A program made the translations under genes and the position numbers. From Chlorokybus atmophyticus (lineage: Eukaryota > Plantae > Mesostigma and Chlorokybus algae), in the NCBI GenBank assembly GCA_009103225.1, contig RHPI01002918.1, positions 3,165 through 67,164 on the forward strand: DNA of 64,000 bases, read 5' to 3'. The stretch's first letter is position 1, and every line of letters starts with the position of its first letter. The notes beneath the pieces are model-generated. The model did no database searches. It saw nothing but the letters and a program-made list of their open reading frames with translations, and had not been told where the DNA came from. Below are positions 4,637 to 62,808 of the stretch, piece after piece.

Positions 4637-5460
4637 CGCATGCACCATCTTGTAACTGTGTCTGAATGCGTATTGTCATAGCTTCGCTGCGTTGTCAGGT
4701 TGCGTGTTGCTGGGGGCATACACGAGCAGCAGTTGGTCAATTGGCAGGCGCATACTGTACTGTACTAGTGTATTGTATCATATTGTGCTAGCAGGCAACA
4801 AATTAGCCTGCCTCACAAAGTAGCAGTGACCAGTTAGTCTATTATGATGGTGTCCAAAAACAAAAACGTCGATTGCAGCTGTGTCCCTTGCCTGCAGTTG
4901 AAATGCAGGCTCAGCAACATATGCTATCTTGCTTGTCTCATTCTTGCACCAACACTAAGTTGTACCACACCTACTCCCTAGCCCGTTTGCTTGGTTGCTT
5001 GTGTGTGTGATATTGTGTAGCGCTTGCTGTTGCTGGTAGCTGCTATTTTATTGCCAGTCTTGCCATTGTCCTTGCACGTGCTATTGTCGTATGTTGAACA
5101 CAATGAAGGCTTGGCAAGTGCATGATTGGTGGTCGCTGCAATGAGCATGTGCTGTTGTTCACACACTGCGCACATGTATGGTGTGGCCCACTTCAACATC
5201 TGGGCGGCATGCTGTCTTTGCTGACCATTACCACATCATCAACTGTGCATGCAGTCATCATTTGCACAGTCTTGCTAGTCTTTGCCTATGCAGTGTGCAC
5301 AGCATCAAGCGCATTGCTCCCAACATCAGCACATTGAGCCATGTACTTGAATTAAGGTACTGTTAGAAGTCAGGCTTGCAGGGTGACAAGCGATATGTCA
5401 AAGGTGCGAGCGCGTATAAGAAAAATCAAGGATGTATATGGACATATGAGAGAAAGTGCG

Positions 5461-12675
<7,215 letters not shown>

Positions 12676-38030: not shown

Positions 38031-41000
38031 CTATCTCTTGCGCCGCTTTTTGTGCCGTTTGTCATCTTCACTTTCACTCTCGCTCTCACTTTCGCTCTCA
38101 GACTCGCTGCTATCAGTGTCAGTGCTGCTGTCCGTGTCGCTGCTTTCAGTGTCAGACTCGGAGCTATCGCTGCCGGATGGCTCGGCCGGGCGCTGCTGCT
38201 GCATGATGATCTTGGGCATGTTTTTGAGGTACTCGCGCAGGCTGTCGGTGAGGCCGCCTAGACCAATGGAGGTGAAGTAGTTAATGGCGAAACGCGTGTT
38301 CTTCGGCGTGTCTTTAGGGAACAGACCCTCGAAGCTGTCCTTCATGTAAGGGTCGTTGAGTCTCTCGTTCAGCTTGCGCAGGCCGAGGTGTTCTGACAGT
38401 TCTTGGAACAAGATCTTGATGAATATGCGACTGGAGCTGGTGGTGTCTTCCTCAGTCAATCTGATGTATGCCAGAGTGGTCCATGGAAGCGCGTCTGTCG
38501 CCAGCAGATGCGCATAGAACTTAGCCACATTACGGAGCTTGTTGGTCTCGAGCCTGTGTATCATCGCATACTGCTTGGCAAAGCAATCGTCAAACAATTG
38601 CTGGTATATCTTGTTCAACCGGCAGAAGCGCTCCCCCAACAAACCATAATACCGCAGGTATGTGCGCTCCTGTAGAAATGACAGAACATAAGCAACATGC
38701 AGTATATGAAACTAAATTCTGCGGTGCAAAATCCCAATCCCTGCGATCTCCACAACGTACCTGAGAGCAACATTCAAGCATCATGGTGCACAGCTCGATC
38801 TCTTGACCTGGAGCCAACTGAATCTTCATCAGCTTGTGACCAGCTTCTTCAAAATCAACAGACGACATGATGGTGAGGTAGATGGTACGCCGCAGGTTGA
38901 CGAGATTTGTTGCCGTTTCATCTTGGATGCGCATCTGCACACAACAGCTGTCAGTCGGATGCCCCCACCAACCTATGCTTCGGTAGATGCCACTCAAACA
39001 AGAGAAGCAGCATGGCGCACAGTATGGCGAATAACCGTAAGTAGACCAGTCAACATGATGTACGAGCACACCTTTTCCTCGTCTTCTTCCTCATCTTCTT
39101 CCTCTGACTCCTCTTCATCGCTGCCTTCCTCAGATTTCTCTTCTTCTTCTTCATCCTCAACGTCCAGTATCTCTTTCTTGATAGCTTCATACTTCGCTTC
39201 ATTCTCCGTGTAATTAGGATCCACCTGCAAAGACACAATGTCAACAGACTGCGAGCACACGCCATCACGCACAGCAAGGGTAACAGGCGCATGCGTAAGC
39301 GATGGCGCGTACCTTGAAGACGTCCAGGTTACTTTCCGGGGTGAGCTCATCGTCCAGTGAAATCTCATGAGTGATCTGATCTTCCTCCTCAACCAGGTCC
39401 AGGTTCTCAGGGACACCTGGGTGATCCTTGAAGCCGCCCTTTCGCACCTGCAGAGACAAGAAGTTCACAATGCAGTTGACAAAAGTGGTCACATGAAGAA
39501 CAAGAACACATTTTGCGTTTAAGCCCTACTCACCGCAAATAGGCCTTCTATCATGAACTGCACTCGCTTGTCGATGGTGCCCTCGTGCAGGATGCCACGG
39601 AACCGCTCAAATATGGAGTGAAGGCCAGTGGGGCTGAGATCTTGTAGCGTCTTGCCACACTCCTTCACAAAAGCAACAGCAAGCTCCACGCTGTCGTCAG
39701 TAGGCCGCTCCAGCAGCAGTGCCAGAATCTGAAACAACAACCGCCACAAACCAAGTTTATTGACATAAATGCACACTCTTGTTGCTCGATTTAATCAACA
39801 ATGGCGTATTTAGCACTTACCTCAAGTGCTAGCAGCTCGTGAGCGACATGCTGGTTTACGAGATGAGCCAAGAACACAGACGCTGCCATGCATACAGGTT
39901 TGTCGTTGCGCTTGTATGCTCGCCGGAACTGCAATACAGCCCTTTTCAGCAACAACTCTCCAAGCTCCGGGAGCTTGGTATTTACAACTGCAGCCAATGC
40001 TGCATAAACGGGTGTAAAGGCTGGAGACGCCATCTGTGACTTCATTAACGAGCGCGCAAAAAGTCCACGCCCGCGCACCAAGTTCTCCGACAACAACTCT
40101 GGTAGCAAATTGGCCAGGTTGCTAGTGTTAACCTAGATTCAGTCACATAACAGGTTAGGAACACTGCATAAGCGCATGTCCAACACTGCAACAGCAAAGG
40201 TGCTCACGCACCTTGTTCACCAGCCCGTTGATGGACTTCCTCAATGCATCCCATGACATGCGCTGGAACTCAGCACTAGCCTTGTCGTCAACGTCGCGCA
40301 TCATTTGGGCCAGCTTGAAAGGTGGAACATACACACCACCCGTACGGCCGGCAGGCACAACCTTGCGAACTGGCTTTGCTGGCTCATCTTGCACCCTGGC
40401 ATCTGAATCGCGCGCAATCTGCAGAGTCTAGGGTCAGAGTGACTACAACCGCAATGCATGTATCCTATGAGTTGCTAGAAGACAGTGTGTCGTGCATTGC
40501 CAAGGCATTAGTCACGAACAAATGGTGGACGTAGTCATACATAGCATGCTGCATAACAAAAAAACTGGCAACACAATACAACATGGACAGCAAGAAATGC
40601 AGAGCGTTTACTTGACGGCAAACGCGCATGCACACTCTACACGGCCAACCACAGAGCGTGACATGTCTGGTAGTAACTTGTCGCAAAGCACACTACCACA
40701 ACTGAGCAACATGGCATGCCTGAAGCAAACAACTACTGTTATCGCAAACGCCATTCACCAACATGAACCGGATGCGCACAACTGATTACACCTGCTTGAC
40801 GCTTGATGTTAGAGCTACAACCATGCATCACCGATACACCGAAACGAGAGGTTGTAACGTCCGCAAGGTTGTAACGTCCAGGAAGGGCTCAATGTACAAA
40901 CAATGTAACTGAAACTCACAGAAGTACACCACCTGCATGCAATATGCTGGCAACTGGCAAGCAATGCAGTGATCGCACAAGAGTTGCATGCGCTCATACC

Positions 41001-45829: not shown

Positions 45830-46317
45830 GGTTTACGAGATGAGCCAAGAACACAGACGCTGCCATGCATACAGGTTTGTCGTTGCGCTTGTATGCTCGC
45901 CGGAACTGCAATACAGCCCTTTTCAGCAACAACTCTCCAAGCTCCGGGAGCTTGGTATTTACAACTGCAGCCAATGCTGCATAAACGGGTGTAAAGGCTG
46001 GAGACGCCATCTGTGACTTCATTAACGAGCGCGCAAAAAGTCCACGCCCGCGCACCAAGTTCTCCGACAACAACTCTGGTAGCAAATTGGCCAGGTTGCT
46101 AGTGTTAACCTAGATTCAGTCACATAACAGGTTAGGAACACTGCATAAGCGCATGTCCAACACTGCAACAGCAAAGGTGCTCACGCACCTTGTTCACCAG
46201 CCCGTTGATGGACTTCCTCAATGCATCCCATGACATGCGCTGGAACTCAGCACTAGCCTTGTCGTCAACGTCGCGCATCATTTGGGCCAGCTTGAAAGGT
46301 GGAACATACACACCACC
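45830..46317. repeat. Exact 488-bp direct copy of CWC22 segment 39853-40340 (exon-intron-exon)
   Basis: Same length and no mismatch seen by eye, intron included. Bounded by a G-run on the left and by N plus a G-run on the right. Confidence 0.9.
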
Positions 46318-47350: not shown

Positions 47351-50300
47351 ATGGCTTCCGATACAACCATCACCACTCAAACAGCACCTGATGGGGAGCA
47401 AGCAACACTGGATGATGACCTTTGGTTCTTTCAAGGCGCTGTGATTATGCTGAACGAGATGGTGCACATCAAGCTTGATGCAAATCTGCTCAAAATTCTC
47501 TTAACAATGACATCCTCCCCGGCTGGCGCCAGCCCCATCTCGCATGCTTTGAACTCAGAAAGCAGGTGGTTCACAACTATTGCTGAAAGGTTTCAAGTCA
47601 ACATCGATGTGCACTGTGGCACCAGCAACGAAAAGTTCACCTCACCTGGTGCATCACGCCATGCCCATGTGGAATGTGATCGTGCCTCAAAGATGTTTGA
47701 TTACCACTGGTGAGTGGTTGGTAACTCCCCAACCCAGCCAGTCACTCAAGGTGCATGAAACATTTACCTGTACATTAGCTTCCATCAGATGTTGTAGACG
47801 TTAAGCACCCGGTTGTAACAGTGACAACTTTGAGTTTGGGGCGCCGTGGCCCACAGGACAGGTGTGCGGGTACGTCACGCATTGCAATTGGCCATGACTT
47901 TATTGAAGTTAGCTGGTTGGCGGCTGACTCTGCAGTGTACGGCAGGTCCCCACCACAGCACGCAACACATGCACCTGGTGGGCTTGGTGCAAGCACCAGC
48001 AACGTCGCACACATCAAGCAGGAGCCTCAGCAGCACTTGCCAGCTCGCAGCGCTCGAGACCAGCAGCGCAATCGCTGGACTGCTGACAAGCGCAAGAGGC
48101 AATCTCAGGTAGGATGTATGCCCTTGGTTCATGAGCGTGTGCTGTCTGCACATGTGGCCATGCATGTACACATGTTTTCTTTGTGTTGATCCCCAGGATA
48201 CAGCGCGCTTGATTGAAAACTCTGAGGCTGATGCAAGTCAAGAGGGCCGTAGGTTTGCTCATGGCAGTGTCCCAAAAGCAAACATGCGGTACACTCGCAC
48301 CTTCTCCCTCAGAGACTGGGAGCCATATCTGAAATCAATTCATGATCCATCGAGACGAGCAAAACTCATAGCTATGCTCAGAGACTATCATCGCCTCAGC
48401 TATGATTTCAAGATGGGGCGGTCGTACCGCGATGCAGTGGGGTTTATGGAGAATGTGGTGAATGGCATCGATAGTTGGCTCGCCACTGACGACTCTCTGG
48501 ACAGAACCAAGATAATGCTCATAACGTCTCCAACACAAGTAGGCAAAACAATTGCTGCAGCGATGGCCAAGAAGGCGGCCCAGCCCTATGTGGACTACGT
48601 TGTTGTGGTCACTGTGGGTGTTCGGATCCAACTGCAAATCATCAAGCGCTTCACAGCGTGGGGAATGGTGAGAAGTGTATGTTGTCGGCTTGCTCTGTCC
48701 CTCCGCAATCTCTTACTCAATTGGTCGCGCAGGACTCGCACAATACACGGCCTTCAATTCAACCAGTCACTGGTGAGAGGCTCGTGGTGACACGCAAGAC
48801 GGTTATTGCAGCAACGAGTGCACAGTTGAGCAAAGTGATTGACTACCTGACGAGAAGAGAAGGCGTCTTATGTCGTGATCTTGGACGAGGCTGATGCTGC
48901 CCTTCCTGGCACCAGAGCCAAACGCACCCAGTACGAGAACAAGGTCATGATGCTGCTCGGGCAGGAGGCAGTTAACCGAGACGTCACACTCGTCCCGCGG
49001 CTGGTGTTGTTCATCACAGCAACGCCTGTGCCGGTGTTCTTCATGATGAGCAGGTTTGGCATGGATTCTGATGATCCCAAGACGGACATTCTGCAAGTCC
49101 CGCCCACGCGAGACTACGTCGGAATCCCCAAGCTGAATGTCGTGAGCGATGGGGATGGACGGAGCACCTACCTCAACCCGAAGGAGAAGGTCCTGGACGG
49201 TGGAAGGTTGACCAAGAAGTATTGTGACTTGATACACCACATGGTAACAAAGGCACGCAGTGAACAGCAGTTCTACGGCCACCTCATACTGATGACCCGC
49301 TCCTACATAGATGAGGTGCGCCCCCCCACCCCCCACCCCCCGGCCCCCCTCTCTCTCTCTCTCNNNNNNNNNNNNNNNNNNNNNNNNNNNNNNNNNNNNN
49401 NNNNNNNNNNNNNNNNNNNNNNNNNNNNNNNNNNNNNNNNNNNNNNNNNNNNNNNNNNNNNNNNNNNNNNNNNNNNNNNNNNNNNNNNNNNNNNNNNNNN
49501 NNNNNNNNNNNNNNNNNNNNNNNNNNNNNNNNNNNNNNNNNNNNNNNNNNNNNNNNNNNNNNNNNNNNNNNNNNNNNNNNNNNNNNNNNNNNNNNNNNNN
49601 NNNNNNNNNNNNNNNNNNNNNNNNNNNNNNNNNNNNNNNNNNNNNNNNNNNNNNNNNNNNNNNNNNNNNNNNNNNNNNNNNNNNNNNNNNNNNNNNNNNN
49701 NNNNNNNNNNNNNNNNNNNNNNNNNNNNNNNNNNNNNNNNNNNNNNNNNNNNNNNNNNNNNNNNNNNNNNNNNNNNNNNNNNNNNNNNNNNNNNNNNNNN
49801 NNNNNNNNNNNNNNNNNNNNNNNNNNNNNNNNNNNNNNNNNNNNNNNNNNNNNNNNNNNNNNNNNNNNNNNNNNNNNNNNNNNNNNNNNNNNNNNNNNNN
49901 NNNNNNNNNNNNNNNNNNNNNNNNNNNNNNNNNNNNNNNNNNNNNNNNNNNNNNNNNNNNNNNNNNNNNNNNNNNNNNNNNNNNNNNNNNNNNNNNNNNN
50001 NNNNNNNNNNNNNNNNNNNNNNNNNNNNNNNNNNNNNNNNNNNNNNNNNNNNNNNNNNNNNNNNNNNNNNNNNNNNNNNNNNNNNNNNNNNNNNNNNNNN
50101 NNNNNNNNNNNNNNNNNNNNNNNNNNNNNNNNNNNNNNNNNNNNNNNNNNNNNNNNNNNNNNNNNNNNNNNNNNNNNNNNNNNNNNNNNNNNNNNNNNNN
50201 NNNNNNNNNNNNNNNNNNNNNNNNNNNNNNNNNNNNNNNNNNNNNNNNNNNNNNNNNNNNNNNNNNNNNNNNNNNNNNNNNNNNNNNNNNNNNNNNNNNN

Positions 50301-52815
50301 NNNNNNNNNNNNNNNNNNNNNNNNNNNNNNNNNNNNNNNNCTCCCCCTCTCTCTCTCCCTCTTGCTTGCGCCTCCTCCCTCTCCCTCTCCCTCTCCGTTT
50401 GCAATGTTGCTCTCGCTGCCCCGCTCTCTTCATCTTGCCCCTCTCCCCTTACACGCACATGCATGCAAGCAGATGGGCGCACCTACACGCACCTGCACAC
50501 TCAAACACGCATTTACTTGTCTTCCCCCTTCTGTGGCTTGCCCACCCCCCACCCCCCATCCCCCCTCTTCTTCTCTCTCTCACTGACATGCAGCTTACTG
50601 CAGGTGAGACGAGCAATCCAATGTCAGTTCAAAGAGAATAACAAAGATCCAATCGTCAGCATACTCAAGTACACTTGGCGTGGAGTTGAGGTGTACTACC
50701 CCGATGGACACTCCACCCACTTTGCAGCAGTAAGTTGTCAAACGGTAGGTAGTATGCATTGTCTTTGATGGCTATGCTAACTGTCGGTCTGCTTGCAGAA
50801 TGACTCTGGCGTTGCCAAAGCCACAATCACAAGCAAATGCGTTGTGTCTCTCGCTACCCCGCAGCTCATGCAGCGTGGCGCCAATCTGCCAATCTTTGTC
50901 GGGCAGGACAGTGCCACCCGCAGCTACCCCATAACACATGAAGCTCTCAATGCAGGCCCAGCTTTCACCATAGAGAACCTGTTGCATCTGCTCGGGCGCT
51001 GCACGGGCAACAGCAAGCAGGTGCTTGATGACATGGAAGTGGACGCACCTTTCATACTTTGCTTGGAGGGAGATCACAAAGCCGCAGAGAACTTGGCTAA
51101 TCTGACAGACATGATTATTGAGCTCATCAGACAGGTACCGAGTGTTACATGCGTATGCATGTCACGGTATCACAGGCCAGAATGTGGCCTAAATGCCCCA
51201 GCAACTTGCTGCCACGCATTCCATTCAATAATATTGCATGCAGGGCTACACCATCCAGGCGGCACTTGAGAAACAAATGCCGGCCAGCACTTACAATATA
51301 TTTTTATCGAGGATTCAGCTCGGGCCTCGCAGCAGACCCATGCAAAAGGACTTGCCTTACGTGCAGAAATTCGACCCCAGCCAAAAGGACTCCAACGCAG
51401 AGCATTTGTGCAAACTGAAGTTGGCGGAGGTTGCTGAGAACTTGACATTCCTTGGTGCACTTGATTTGACAACTGTGGGGCTGCCGTTTCCTACCACCAG
51501 TGCTGATGTCGGGAAGGTCATTGACTTTGCCAGAAACAAAGCCAAGGGTCGTACACTCCATGAAGACATCCGCATGGTGGCAAAAGCGAAGCTAAGAGCG
51601 GCAGGGCATGAAGACGCTGCAAATCTTAACATGGATGCAGAGTCAAGATTGCATGTTATGTCCGCACAGGATCTGTTGCCAGAACTCGCGCTGGATGAGA
51701 TTGAGCGGCTCATGAAGAAACCAAAACCTGGCAACCGGGTGCGTGCCATTCACAAGACACATACTAGTGTCTAGTTCTGCAGTTAAATCACCTTACCCTT
51801 CATGCAGGTGTATGAGGCAGTGGCAGATGCATTTGGCAATCAGGAAAAGTTCAGCAAGGTGATCTTGATACGAGACAACAATGAACTGAAGGTGGACCCG
51901 CGTGAGAAGTACCCGAAAGGCGTGCTGTATTTCCGGCCATTCCACTACCAAGATGAGATATTCTTTGCAATAGTACAACTCAAGCCTGCAATCAGCTCAC
52001 TGCGAGGCAACATGAGCGTGTGGTACCATGTGGCGTTGGTAACAACCGAGGCGGGGTCGCCGACAGTGGTGAAGGAGCGGAGGTTGGAAGATGTCAACCT
52101 GCACATTACCCCGACAGTCATGGTGTCGCTCACCTACCCGGTCCCGCCCATTCCAGATGATGAGACTGAAGCCGACGAGGTGCTGCAGGCGCATGCTTTA
52201 TGTTGTGCAGTAATGTCATTCCAAAAGCACTGTGCTGACACCAGACGCTGGCACTCACAATGTTGCAACGTGATGTTTCATGAAAGGTTGTCGATGTCAA
52301 TGAAGAGGACTTGACGGAGGCCTCGTCTGATGCGGAGCCACTGTGTGTGAGTACTGTCACAGTCTCCCGCTATCTTTGCTGACAACTCTGTTCCTAGGTT
52401 AATAAAAGGCGTTGCCCACGTTATAGCCTTGCTTGTAGCCCTGACTGCTTGGTCTGATATGGATGTTATAACTGCAGTTGAAGGTTCTTTCCATGTGCAG
52501 GACTTGCAGCATCTTGTGGATTTGGGAAACTTGCGGCGAAATACGGATATAAGCAAGCTGCTATACGCTTTGTGGTCCCTGCACAATGAAGACAGCACCC
52601 AGCTCATCACATATAAGCGCCTTTGTCGCATTGGCTACAACCCGAGGCCCAGCAATAGCAACACCATCAACACGCGGCTCGTGAAGAAATACCGCGTGCT
52701 GCGTCATGTATCTGACGCATGCTTTGCGTTGACTGCGTTTGGTTTGCGGCTGATGCAGCGCCTTTATTATCCTGATGAAGCACAGCTCCAGCAAACAGGA
52801 CAAGAAGCTTCTTAA
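47351..52815 (+). CDS. Large uncharacterised SF2-type ATPase/helicase-like protein with probable C-terminal winged helix; apparent frameshift near 48860; spans an assembly gap inside an intron
   Basis: Motif I ITSPTQVGKT; Ia VVVVT; Ib-like VIAATSAQLSKV; II VILDEAD; III FITATP; PPTRDYVGI; V-like LMQRGANLP; VI-like ENLLHLLGRCTG; C-terminal LLYALWSL..TINTRLVKKYRVLRHVSDACFALTAFGLRLM. Exons are linked by GT-AG sites. Confidence 0.65.
49364..50340. other. Assembly gap (N run) flanked by CT/C-rich sequence
   Basis: Continuous N run. Confidence 1.
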
Positions 52816-55696: not shown

Positions 55697-57094
<1,398 letters not shown>

Positions 57095-57704: not shown

Positions 57705-60700
57705 TCATGCAAAGGCAGTGCCGACGAAACGCACAAACCGCTGCGCATAGCTGTCGGGGTCAATGGCGGATATGGTGTTCCCGTCCTGGAACAAGCTCTT
57801 GTACGAGTGTTCAAGGTGCTTCGCAATGTTGTACTCCTGTAGTATGTCAATAATGCCAAAGAAGAGCACCACATCCTGGAGTTCATTCTTGGGGCACTGC
57901 TCCTCCTTGTCCTTGTACTTCATGGGGATCATTGTTGCCGCCATGTTAACGCCGAGCTGCACGCGTGTCTTGCCATAAGCAAATGCAAGGGCATCTGTAC
58001 CACCCTGGCCCACGGAGATTGGCTTGATATTGGCCAGTTGCATGCTAGGACTCGTCGTGAGAGAGCGCTGCGATGACTTACGGTAGCTGAGGCTGAGGTT
58101 AATCAGCTCGTCTTCGCTCATGGACTCGCGACGCCAGCTACGCATGACCTCAGTGGTCTTTTCCACCTCTCTCAACTTGCGCACATGGATACCGAGCAGC
58201 AGGCTGTAGTCCATGATGCGCTGCTCGGTGAGGAAGTCACAGTCGGCTTCCAGCTGGCGCAGCAGCTTCTCGCGCCATCCGGTTTCAAGCTTGAAGTACC
58301 ACTCAAGGTCTAAGTCTTTGAGGATAGTGAGCTCGTTGCGCTTCGCCGTGTCTGTCAAGCGGCCGAGAGTGGAGCCCTTTAGATCAAAGCGCATGTGCAT
58401 CGGGAGCTCTGATCGGAACAGGTTGCCCATTACCATGAAGCGCACTTTGCGGCCTTTGTGTGGTTTGATACGATGCAGGCCGTAGAACTTTGTGAGCAAC
58501 GTGTCATCGTACTCCATAACTTGACGGAAGTAGGCCGGTAGCATGTTGAGAAAGCTGTGCATCTCATGCTTGCGCATGGTCTTGATGATAAACCGGTCAT
58601 CTGCACTCAAAAAGAACACACTGCCGCTCTTGCCCGGCGACGCGAGTTCCCTCAAGGCTTGGTCCCCGCACAACGACATCATGTAATCTCCAGCGTCAAT
58701 TGTGAAACGCTCACGTAGTAACCTGTTCAGAAACAAATCAGTGCAACGAACCATATCATGTCACCATTCAACTGCTGACAGACAGTTACAAGAAAAACGT
58801 GTGCAGTAGTACACCAAAGCCAACCTTAAAAGCATGAGATGTGGGGAGCAAGCATCATGAGCTATCAGGCGAGCCAAACATCACCTGAACACCATTGGGC
58901 AGTAGTCCTTCCACTTGAAGTCTCCGGATGGATGTGGCGGGGTTTTCGAGCTGCCGTTGTGGGGGAACCGCTGAAATAAGGTGGCCTTGGAGCTGAAGTC
59001 CTCTTTTGTTAATGGTCTCAAGGGTACGGGTGTAATTTTGCCAACCGAGTAGCGAATACCAAGCTGCCAGCATAAACAGTGTTAATGTTGCAACAACCAC
59101 TCTCCAGCAAGCATGATCTGTACTGGCTTGCCAAGCTATTGACGGCGAACAATAATAGCGCTGCTGCATTCAACCTACCTGTAGATTGAGCATCAAGTCA
59201 TAGCTGCGATGCCCTTTGAATATAGTTTCTCCTGCCCTCTTCACATTGACACGTCGCCGTCGTCGCCTCCGAGTCTTGCGGTGCAACCTGGGGAGCTTGT
59301 CCAGCATCTGTGTAACCAGCCAGTGTCAGTGCAGGCGGCATGCACCTAGCACGCATTCAAGTAAAAGCTGCGCTAACACAACAACAAGCACGCTGCATCA
59401 ACGGACTCTCAACATATGGCAGGGGTGGCTCACGCTTGTAGGGTGGGACGCAACAACTGATATCATACTTCAACACGTACCTCCACAACTTCATTGACAA
59501 GGATGCCATGATGATATTCCCTCCGCAAAACTACAGGCTTTTCGCCTTCCTTGCGCAATGAGTGCTTGCTTTCGGCATTGTCACCTGATTTGTTCTCTTC
59601 CATAGATGAGGCCCCATTGTCGCGGATACTTGGCATGCCTTCCACCTCTGACTGCGGCGCTGGCGACAATCGCAGCCGATCCAAGGCAGCCTCAGTCCCC
59701 GAGTCTTCCCTTCCAGATGGTGCTGAAAGGCTGCGATGGTGCCAACGACGACCAGCACGCGGAGCTGCATAAGACACAAATACATCAGCCATTACACTTC
59801 AGAATAGAAGTCAGAAGTCAGGTAGATAGTCACCTGCCATACTTTCCCCTAGTTATCCTTCCCCCCCCANCGCACACATAAGACCACATGACATGATCGT
59901 CAGGCTTGGCGCAAAGTACCTGTCTGAGCGCCACTTGGATCTCCACTCTCGCTTCCACTCGTGTGCTCATTCTCTGCTTCCCCATCCGCTTCGGTGTCTA
60001 GACCCGTCTCATCAGCCTCCACAAGGGGGTCGTGCAGCTTTTGAAGCTCCGTAAGCTCCAATTTGTCCTCCAGTGGGTCCTGCTGACTAAAAGCGCGAGT
60101 GGTCTGCTTCAGGTGCCGTCTGGCTCTCCGAATGGACAGCAGAACCGCAGCGTAATACGTGCCAGTGCCTGCAGCAACCCAGTGTCATGCAAGAAGCAAC
60201 CATTCGGTTCCTTGAGTCACAAGGTGCATATGCATATGCACAAGCAATGCTGACAAACACGGTGATGTAAGTCAGCACTGCAGATTCTTGGACAAAACTT
60301 GCATTGCCAGCAAGGGCGCAGTCACCCACGACTTGTGTGTTGTCTAGTCATGAGCAATTGCAGCGTGCGGGGTCGGTAGTGGTGTGTGTGTGTGNNNNNN
60401 NNNNNNNNNNNNNNNNNNNNNNNNNNNNNNNNNNNNNNNNNNNNNNNNNNNNNNNNNNNNNNNNNNNNNNNNNNNNNNNNNNNNNNNNNNNNNNNNNNNN
60501 NNNNNNNNNNNNNNNNNNNNNNNNNNNNNNNNNNNNNNNNNNNNNNNNNNNNNNNNNNNNNNNNNNNNNNNNNNNNNNNNNNNNNNNNNNNNNNNNNNNN
60601 NNNNNNNNNNNNNNNNNNNNNNNNNNNNNNNNNNNNNNNNNNNNNNNNNNNNNNNNNNNNNNNNNNNNNNNNNNNNNNNNNNNNNNNNNNNNNNNNNNNN

Positions 60701-62808
60701 NNNNNNNNNNNNNNNNNNNNNNNNNNNNNNNNNNNNNNNNNNNNNNNNNNNNNNNNNNNNNNNNNNNNNNNNNNNNNNNNNNNNNNNNNNNNNNNNNNNN
60801 NNNNNNNNNNNNNNNNNNNNNNNNNNNNNNNNNNNNNNNNNNNNNNNNNNNNNNNNNNNNNNNNNNNNNNNNNNNNNNNNNNNNNNNNNNNNNNNNNNNN
60901 NNNNNNNNNNNNNNNNNNNNNNNNNNNNNNNNNNNNNNNNNNNNNNNNNNNNNNNNNNNNNNNNNNNNNNNNNNNNNNNNNNNNNNNNNNNNNNNNNNNN
61001 NNNNNNNNNNNNNNNNNNNNNNNNNNNNNNNNNNNNNNNNNNNNNNNNNNNNNNNNNNNNNNNNNNNNNNNNNNNNNNNGGGGGGCGGGGGTGCAAGGTA
61101 CTCACCATGCTTCAACCCGCTTGACCATGTGCCTTCATAAACAGACCCGTCTGCCCATGTGAAGCGACCTGTGCAATGGGTTGCAACTGAGGACTGAGGC
61201 TTGGGATAACAAGTTAACCCAGCAGCACAAGTCGTCTGCACGCAGTCATCCAAAGCAGCTGCGTATGACCTTACCTTGGCCATCCTCTTTGTTGTTTTTC
61301 CATTCGCCATCATATCTGTCTCCATTCGCCCAAACAAAAGTGCCTCTGCCTGTCATGCAGATGGAGGTGTGATTTGTGACACAGCTGACTGTCTGAGAAG
61401 ATGAGCACCCAACATTGCATGCTGCTTGCTTTCCCAATGCCACAACCTCCGCCTCATGCTGCGCACTTACCAGACATGCAGCCTGCAACCCACTCCCCAC
61501 TGTACTCGTTTCCGTTGGCCCATCGGAACCGGCCAGGGCCTGTGAACTATATGGTTGGCATTGGCACCAATTTGCCAGCTGCTTCAAGCTAACAGCCCGT
61601 AATGGCACTCACCTTCGTGCATGTCATCTCGCCACAATCCTTCATATACATCTCCAGACGAGTATCGCTTGATACCAAGCCCTGGAAGTACGTAGTGGCT
61701 TCAACAGTTTGTGCCAATACCGCAAGCGAGTCAGAAATATGAATGTCTTACCATGCTTTTGGTCTTTGAGCCAGCTACCAATGTAACTCGCCCCATCCAC
61801 TGCTATGTAGGTACCCATTCCCTTCATACGGCAAGATTGTTGATTCCATTGCAAGCAGGTGCGCAAACAACTTGGCAATTGCATGCGAGGGGAATGCGCC
61901 CTTACCTGCATATAACCATCCACCCAGTCGCCCTCGTACTTTGCGCCCGATGCCCACGCATAGCTGGCCAACCCAATGCAAAACAAATCAGTTAATAGTG
62001 CAAATCACACCAAAGCCGCAAGCCAACCCACTACATACAATGCAAACAGTTTGAACATTTTTGCGCGAGACAGACAGCAGCTTGAAACCACACAGTTACC
62101 TGCCCCTGCCGTACTGCTGGCCTTCAATCCAGTCACCATCATACCAGCTGCGATCAGCCCAGTCATATTTGCCCTTCCCGTGCGGCTGTTGCAGTACATG
62201 CATGTCAGTCAAATGCCAATGGAGATATCAACATCAAACTGCAAAGAAGATGGCATGAGTTTGCAAACCTTGCCCTCCTTCCACTCGCCAACGTACACAT
62301 CACCATTGTCAAACTTCTTTGTCTGCAAGCAACAGAAGCCTTGCTCACTGCTTATGACCAGACATGACACGTGTGGAATGGCAAAGGTACTTCGCGCCCC
62401 TCGACTTCATTCTTGCACAACAGTGCTGACATGACATGGTGCTGATGTAGCGCAATTGTGCAGGCGAGCAGTGCAGTCAACTGCGGCTGGTACGAGAAAT
62501 GCATCGTGACCAGACCACTTGGCGAAATAGCTGCAATGCACAACCATGCAGCACAGAGAGTGCCTTCGAATTGCCAACCCGCAACAAACTACAAACACCC
62601 TCCCTTTACCTATGCAAGAAGCACATTACAATGCAGCATGATGAGCTGTGGGTGCTTGTCTGTCAGTGTGGACGCAGCGTACCTGTACATTCTTCTTTTC
62701 CACCCCGACCTTTTTGGCATTGCGGTAAGCGTTGAGAGTCTCTACGAACTCCAGGTTTGAAATGTTGAGCTCATGGTTGGATGTCAAGCTTGTTTGGATC
62801 GACACCAT
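57705..62808 (-). CDS. PIP5K: Phosphatidylinositol-4-phosphate 5-kinase, plant type B (MORN repeats plus kinase domain), multi-exon
   Basis: MORN repeats NGDVYVGEWKEGK, HGKGKYDWADRSWYDGDW, WANGDRYDGEW, WADGSVYEGTW; kinase SPGKSGSVFFLSADDRFIIKT, FDLKGS..LKDLD, MDYSLLLGIH, FGIIDILQEYN. Confidence 0.95.
60395..61079. other. Assembly gap (N run) in a PIP5K intron
   Basis: Continuous N run flanked by (TG)n and a G-run. Confidence 1.

Follow-up and report, generated by a model that had tools for sequence, protein, structure and literature searches.

The motor (H) subunits of the CglI and NgoAVII systems belong to the DEAD-Z1 type (PF10593). They contain two RecA-like domains followed by a DNA-binding C-terminal region, and their genes are located next to a gene for a C5 DNA methyltransferase. 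DEAD-Z1 motors are characterized by the Z1 profile, by a glutamine in place of a glycine in the Walker A motif, which is their hallmark, by a motif VI shortened to Q-x-x-R, and by an H/H motif with a loop (PMC5861437). In diatoms, fungi and green algae, the C5 methyltransferase DNMT5 likewise ties an ATPase of superfamily 2 (SF2) to cytosine methylation (PMC9998398). For the DNMT4-type enzymes of diatoms the function is unknown, and accessory proteins are possibly needed (PMC9998398). Here we describe a gene of the alga Chlorokybus atmophyticus, located at positions 47351-52815 of a 64-kb stretch of contig RHPI01002918.1 (the window). In an original prediction, made from the sequence alone, it was considered to encode an SF2 ATPase with the motifs of a Z1-type restriction helicase, acquired from bacteria or viruses. 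We found that the gene is nuclear and spliced, that the SF2-type ATPase it encodes stands outside the known eukaryotic helicase families and that, on the evidence of its sequence, this ATPase is a member of an unnamed algal SF2 family. The conserved pairing of this family with a C5 methyltransferase across at least eight diverged algal lineages is the main new result of the analysis.

An unnamed family of algal SF2 ATPases

An exhaustive scan of 1.84 billion representative proteins revealed a single relative, P0001, a protein of 996 amino acids from one JGI metagenome (E = 1.4e-5, 34% identity). The variant motifs of the window gene recur in it in unchanged order, and four pieces of the gene match it colinearly. 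A word search with residues 400-996 of P0001 recovered ten relatives, and a search with the family alignment sixteen further clusters; the exon piece with motifs II and III retrieved nothing in a word search that covers proteins of 85-270 amino acids only. The family comprises approximately 30 clusters (P0001-P0032), all of them of hypothetical or otherwise unnamed proteins. One member is GFH47348.1 of the diatom Chaetoceros tenuissimus, which is encoded on a nuclear contig of 1.3 Mb, and one cluster includes an MMETSP transcript. Other relatives originate from marine or freshwater metagenome contigs with eukaryotic neighbours. Gene calling in metagenome contigs often splits a family gene into several short adjacent products, for example of 615, 117 and 173 amino acids (locus L002, 7980-10841; clusters of P0017, P0028 and P0030), which suggests introns or frame breaks.

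The family alignment has 30 invariant columns, all of which are located at SF2 motifs (G-x-T-Q-x-G-K, D-E-x-D-x-x-x-R-T, S-A, R-x-x-S-F-R, P-T and Q). When compared to a hidden Markov model (HMM) of independent relatives, the piece of the window gene with motifs II and III reached E = 9e-23 and the piece with motifs V and VI reached E = 5e-7, and five pieces of the gene are colinear on the model. Therefore, the resemblance of the motifs is more than chance. Some relatives carry further domains. In P0006 (listed as P0006/P0015) an N-terminal chromatin-type domain, a bromodomain (E = 3.8e-16), is fused to the ATPase; P0001 shows a weak, sub-threshold PHD-like finger (E = 0.012), and for P0019 a precomputed match to PF04690 exists.

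Comparison of all open reading frame (ORF) pieces of the window gene with Pfam, NCBIfam, PADLOC and PHROGs gave nothing above threshold. There were only sub-threshold P-loop matches, the Walker A exon being faintly similar to the library profiles of ResIII (E = 0.25), DinG (0.01-0.03) and terminase (0.014). Neither the window pieces nor the relatives exceeded the gathering score of PF00270, PF00176, PF04851 or PF00271; the closest scores to known families, both below the cut-off, were those of ResIII for the window and of DEAD for one relative (E = 0.0045). The ATPase core of the family members matched no model of Pfam, PADLOC or NCBIfam. A search of the PDB sequences with three exon pieces gave chance rows only (E = 1.3, and E = 0.009 to an unrelated viral nucleoprotein fusion, which we also take as chance), and the family profile found no helicase there. 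Thus, with no DEAD, Helicase_C, SNF2 or ResIII match above the cut-off, the expectation that the gene stands outside the eukaryotic DEAD-box and SNF2 families is borne out, and the profile searches placed it in no known vertically inherited eukaryotic helicase family.

To judge the fold, an AlphaFold2 model of the relative P0004 was used, which is based on a ten-sequence alignment and has a mean predicted local distance difference test score (pLDDT) of 72. It shows two beta-alpha-beta domains (approximately residues 27-230 and 268-414), i.e. the tandem-RecA fold of SF2 that the original prediction implied, as well as a helical region and, at the end, a helix-helix-strand-strand unit. By homology of both halves, this fold probably extends to the window protein. 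In a Foldseek comparison of the model with the PDB, Pol theta helicase, RecQ/BLM, Mfd, DEAD-box proteins and ISWI were all matched at probability 1.0, and none of them stands out. They share the tandem-RecA core, but the likeness is generic (10-14% identity, TM scores of 0.2-0.5) and comes without a sequence-profile match. The Z1 motor was beyond the reach of this comparison, since of H.CglI only the C-terminal domain is present in the PDB (6F1S). Among predicted viral structures, the four best matches were uncharacterised proteins with E = 1e-13 to 3e-11, versus 2e-8 for the next one, at 11-14% identity and target TM scores of up to 0.62. These are:
A0A1C9C5C9, Heterosigma akashiwo virus 01
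A0A0N9QIR2, Chrysochromulina ericina virus
A0A1X9VNN5, marine Mimivirus AB-566-O17
M1I2R9
SF2 proteins of giant viruses of algae and protists are thus the best structural matches of the family model, yet sequence patterns recovered none of them in virus contigs. In summary, the fold of the family is that of an ordinary SF2 protein, but the family is still unnamed, lacks a Pfam model and includes no member that has been studied.

The methyltransferase gene next to the ATPase gene in relatives

In Chaetoceros tenuissimus the ATPase gene is oriented head-to-head with a gene for a C5 DNA methyltransferase (PF00145), at a distance of 317 bp. The same head-to-head pair is present on a eukaryote-like ENA contig of 52 kb. 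Between these two loci the ATPases are 33% and the methyltransferases 31% identical. A scan of metagenome contigs yielded 22 further loci, and 16 loci with at least 3 kb of upstream sequence were considered informative. In nine of the 16, the methyltransferase is encoded on the other strand, at a distance of 0.5-2.6 kb from the region of ATPase homology:
L001 (Chaetoceros), 5173-11025, head-to-head
L002, 5422-10084, head-to-head
L005, L006, L008, L014, L017, L019 and L020, head-to-head
Where both genes could be delimited, the intergenic gap of the pair measures 317-621 bp. One of the 16 informative loci has the methyltransferase gene upstream on the same strand. L026 (458-1252, 3047-4128) departs from the head-to-head rule in this way: its methyltransferase precedes, on the same strand, an ATPase fragment with a weak match.

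With the exception of one close pair, ATPases from paired loci share 27-48% identity, and therefore at least eight lineages with the pairing must be counted. The other neighbours are ordinary eukaryotic genes, which encode, for example, a GH47 mannosidase, Cys-tRNA synthetase, ferredoxin-dependent bilin reductase, BTB and RING proteins, a NIF phosphatase, a prenyltransferase, a ZIP transporter and an aspartyl protease. Since they differ at every locus, the ATPase-methyltransferase pair is the only conserved unit. A nuclease domain was seen neither in the family members nor in the neighbouring genes of the related loci.

The catalytic domain of the partner methyltransferase resembles DNMT1-type enzymes and M.HaeIII to about the same degree, while DNMT2 is matched weakly and no DNMT3 is among the matches listed. 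Surveys of microalgal and eukaryotic DNMTs (PMC9998398, PMC12344493) mention no such ATPase neighbour, and none was found in further literature searches. The arrangement also differs from that of DNMT5. There the ATPase is of the SNF2 type and fused to the methyltransferase in one polypeptide, whereas the algal family is encoded by a separate gene and represents an unrelated SF2 type without a match to SNF2_N or Helicase_C.

The Chlorokybus gene and its surroundings

The seven motif strings quoted in the original prediction are translations of ORFs on the plus strand, at the place and in the order given there. PTQVGKT is encoded in exon 3, ILDEAD, ITATP and PPTRDYVG in exon 4, MQRGANL and LLHLLGRCTG in exon 6, and FALTAFGLRLM in exon 10. 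They can be joined in a model of ten exons, which extends from the ATG at 47351 to the stop codon at 52813-52815 and has GT-AG borders at nine of nine introns, with consistent phases. The features of the locus are:
44.3-45.3 kb, gene for a molybdopterin (molybdenum cofactor) oxidoreductase, flanking the ATPase gene
47351-47709, + strand, exon 1, start codon at 47351, ORF with GT donor; N-terminal region without match to the family or to profiles
47946-48108, + strand, exon 2, basic low-complexity linker with AG/GT bounds, entered in phase 2 and left in phase 0
48197-48667, + strand, exon 3, variant Walker A (motif I, T-Q-x-G-K-T) and motif Ia; profile positions 148-197, E = 6e-5
48733-49315, + strand, exon 4, motifs II and III; two frame pieces, colinear on the family profile, with one frameshift
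49316-50603, + strand, intron 4, GT donor and AG acceptor; holds an assembly gap with C/CT-rich low-complexity sequence on both sides
49364-50340, assembly gap (run of N) within intron 4
50604-50729, + strand, exon 5, profile positions 425-451, weak but colinear
50799-51134, + strand, exon 6, motif V (MQRG...) and motif VI (..LLGR..); family HMM E = 5e-7
51244-51738, + strand, exon 7, C-terminal region, no relatives detected
51808-52179, + strand, exon 8, C-terminal region, no relatives detected
52287-52346, + strand, exon 9, short acidic linker
52501-52815, + strand, exon 10, stop codon; putative winged-helix tail of the original prediction
57.7-61.3 kb, - strand, MORN and PIP5K gene, flanking the ATPase gene

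The exons with SF2 motifs differ in their conservation. Exon 3 keeps five of seven family-invariant columns and exon 4 eight of ten. The second frame piece of exon 4 gave the sole match among the 1.84 billion proteins, and reached BLASTP E values down to 1e-11 against relatives. Exon 6 is similar to the family with E = 1.4e-4 among the 1372 open stretches of the window and with BLASTP E values of about 1e-4 to P0007, P0003 and P0002; it keeps four of nine invariant columns. Exons 1-2 and 7-10 show no significant similarity to the family or to profiles. For exon 10, a fold predicted from the single sequence has a pLDDT of 48.5 and is uninformative on the putative winged helix, and the exon weakly matches the C-terminus of P0001 (E = 0.17).

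The gap in intron 4 raises the question of a hidden exon. On the family HMM, the alignment stops at profile position 406 ahead of the gap and resumes at position 425 behind it, with 13 residues in the unaligned ends for 18 profile positions. Further, motifs III and V are approximately 108 residues apart in the window pieces versus approximately 115 in P0001. Profile continuity and motif spacing thus indicate that the coding sequence is continuous over the gap, without a hidden exon. The length of exon 4, however, cannot be divided by three, while the exons on either side of it are in phase. Exon 4 therefore carries one frameshift, and as assembled the gene is not one open frame. The shift may be a mutation or an assembly error; the latter is considered because the draft assembly has gaps and at least one join artefact nearby. 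Thus, while the gene could be reconstructed as spliced and with its motifs in order, as predicted, the frameshift had been overlooked in the original prediction. The remark that its exons are long compared to those of neighbouring genes does not hold, because the window also contains the PIP5K gene, one exon of which exceeds 1 kb.

The ATPase gene is set in gene-dense nuclear DNA with host genes on both sides. Its codon usage is host-like: relative synonymous codon usage is correlated with r = 0.73, versus 0.74 between two host sets, and the GC content at third codon positions is 0.60 versus 0.67. No PF00145-like sequence is present in the window (best tblastn E = 3.5), and neither a second copy of the gene nor terminal or flanking repeats were found there. 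A search of the window for RNA families revealed none.

Several peculiarities of the assembly were noted in passing. A direct duplicate of 488 bp with 100% identity is located at 39853-40340 and 45830-46317. Because its downstream copy, approximately 1 kb upstream of the gene start, stops right at a single N (46318), it is most likely an assembly-join artefact. A very long (CT)n/(GA)n microsatellite at approximately 56070-56500, next to a single N, is within or adjacent to a small unidentified gene (55.7-56.7 kb). A second assembly gap, at approximately 60390-61070, is inside the MORN and PIP5K gene, whose combination of domains may point to an alga of the green lineage.

Explanations weighed and possible function

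The explanation we favour, at a probability of roughly 0.55, is that the window gene is a resident, intron-containing nuclear gene whose product belongs to an unnamed family of microalgal, methyltransferase-associated tandem-RecA SF2 ATPases, as a divergent member that is unpaired and possibly decaying. The proteins of this family would be ATP-driven DNA or chromatin translocases which work together with the partner methyltransferase. The ATPase may open access to the DNA for the methyltransferase, or it may couple methylation to movement along the DNA. By analogy, the pair could be a two-gene counterpart of the ATPase-coupled methylation known from the SNF2 part of DNMT5, from DDM1/LSH-type helpers and from the translocating H subunit of the CglI type. 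The window copy itself would be a paralogue or orthologue which has left the pair and either has changed its role or is beginning to decay, provided that the frameshift is no assembly error. We read it in this way because there is no methyltransferase in the 64 kb, residues of motifs V and VI are lost, the N- and C-terminal regions are unrelated to the family, and the frame is shifted.

Several observations speak against this explanation. The basis for a functional tie of the family to methylation is gene order alone, and the methyltransferase gene is absent from six of the 16 informative loci and from the window. The window copy is the most divergent member of the family, being approximately 34% identical to the best-matching relative over a single exon piece, and the C-terminal 410 residues of the protein match nothing. 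The window copy keeps 17 of 26 placeable invariant columns; in exon 6, motif V has lost its S-F-R and motif VI its Q. This count is based on three placements, as the addfragments mode misplaced short or divergent pieces. In the MAFFT alignment, the Walker A piece was scattered and was dropped. Further, the gene was searched exon by exon, with exon 4 as two pieces, at a sensitivity below that of a whole protein. With respect to the pairing, the window copy is equidistant from methyltransferase-linked and unlinked members.

It is tempting to go one step further and to regard the ATPase and the head-to-head C5 methyltransferase as an unrecognised two-gene module of microalgae for ATP-dependent DNA methylation or genome surveillance, which would be kin by descent to prokaryotic DEAD-Z1-type or giant-virus motors and of which the window gene would be a lineage-specific offshoot that has left the pair. 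Such a kinship is hinted at by the common glutamine Walker A and by the viral structural kin. We consider this extension possible, but less likely than not.

Alternatively, the gene could be a decaying pseudogene without present function. The frameshift in exon 4, the lost invariant residues of motifs V and VI, the lack of a close orthologue among the 1.84 billion representative proteins and the missing partner gene would all be in line with decay. However, apart from the one shift, approximately 1080 codons in ten exons are open, all nine introns have kept GT-AG borders and consistent phases, and the Walker A motif, the DEAD motif, motif III and the arginine of motif VI are intact. In addition, in a draft assembly with gaps and a join artefact close to the gene, the shift may be an error. 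A pseudogene therefore seems unlikely to us.

The next possibility corresponds to the original prediction, namely a DEAD-Z1-type restriction helicase of bacterial or viral origin, which has gained introns and acts as the genome-defence motor of a restriction-modification-like module. A part of the resemblance stands. The glutamine Walker A is shared with DEAD-Z1 motors (PMC5861437), being invariant in the family (T430, Q431, G433 and K434) and present as TQVGKT in the window. Like these motors, the family has two RecA-like domains, and the C-terminal region that follows them was noted as a further likeness to the DNA-binding region of the motors. Most relatives, but not the window gene, are paired with a C5 methyltransferase as in the CglI and NgoAVII operons, and the top structural matches are the SF2 proteins of algal giant viruses. 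Two of the features which characterize the Z1 type are not found, however. PF10593 was matched neither by the window pieces (E <= 1), for which the exon-by-exon scan lowers the sensitivity, nor by P0001 (E <= 1) or ten full-length relatives (E <= 0.1), and PADLOC and NCBIfam gave no Z1-type match for the window or the relatives. The spacing of motif VI is not shortened: Q793 and R797 of the family form an ordinary Q-x-x-x-R, with H at the Q column in the window. A nuclease subunit was seen neither at the related loci nor in the window. Unlike the DEAD-Z1 motors, the members of the family are eukaryotic, their genes are spliced, and some carry fused chromatin-reader domains. An acquisition from bacteria is also not substantiated, as no relative was detected in 185,579 prokaryote species genomes, a search with one motif pattern only and thus weak evidence of absence. 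No sequence relatives came up in the virus contig collection, which was scanned twice with pieces of the window gene and once with the family alignment. Taken together, the Z1 likeness is a lead, not membership, and we regard a Z1-type restriction helicase as quite unlikely.

Finally, an unrecognised mobile element or an endogenous giant-virus fragment is very improbable and for the window already largely refuted, and the proposed viral or mobile acquisition is, as a recent event, not supported: the remote structural likeness to giant-virus proteins and the patchy, rare occurrence of the family could be cited for it, but the gene is present in a single copy in the window, without terminal or flanking repeats (the sole repeat nearby being the assembly-join duplicate), lies between the molybdenum cofactor oxidoreductase and PIP5K host genes, has the composition and codon usage of the host, and is related to loci with differing, ordinary host neighbours.

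For the window alone, the outcome is thus more modest than for the family: it holds an outlying, possibly broken copy without the partner. For the family, an ATPase dedicated to a C5 methyltransferase would be a concrete candidate for the accessory protein that diatom DNMT4-type enzymes may need.

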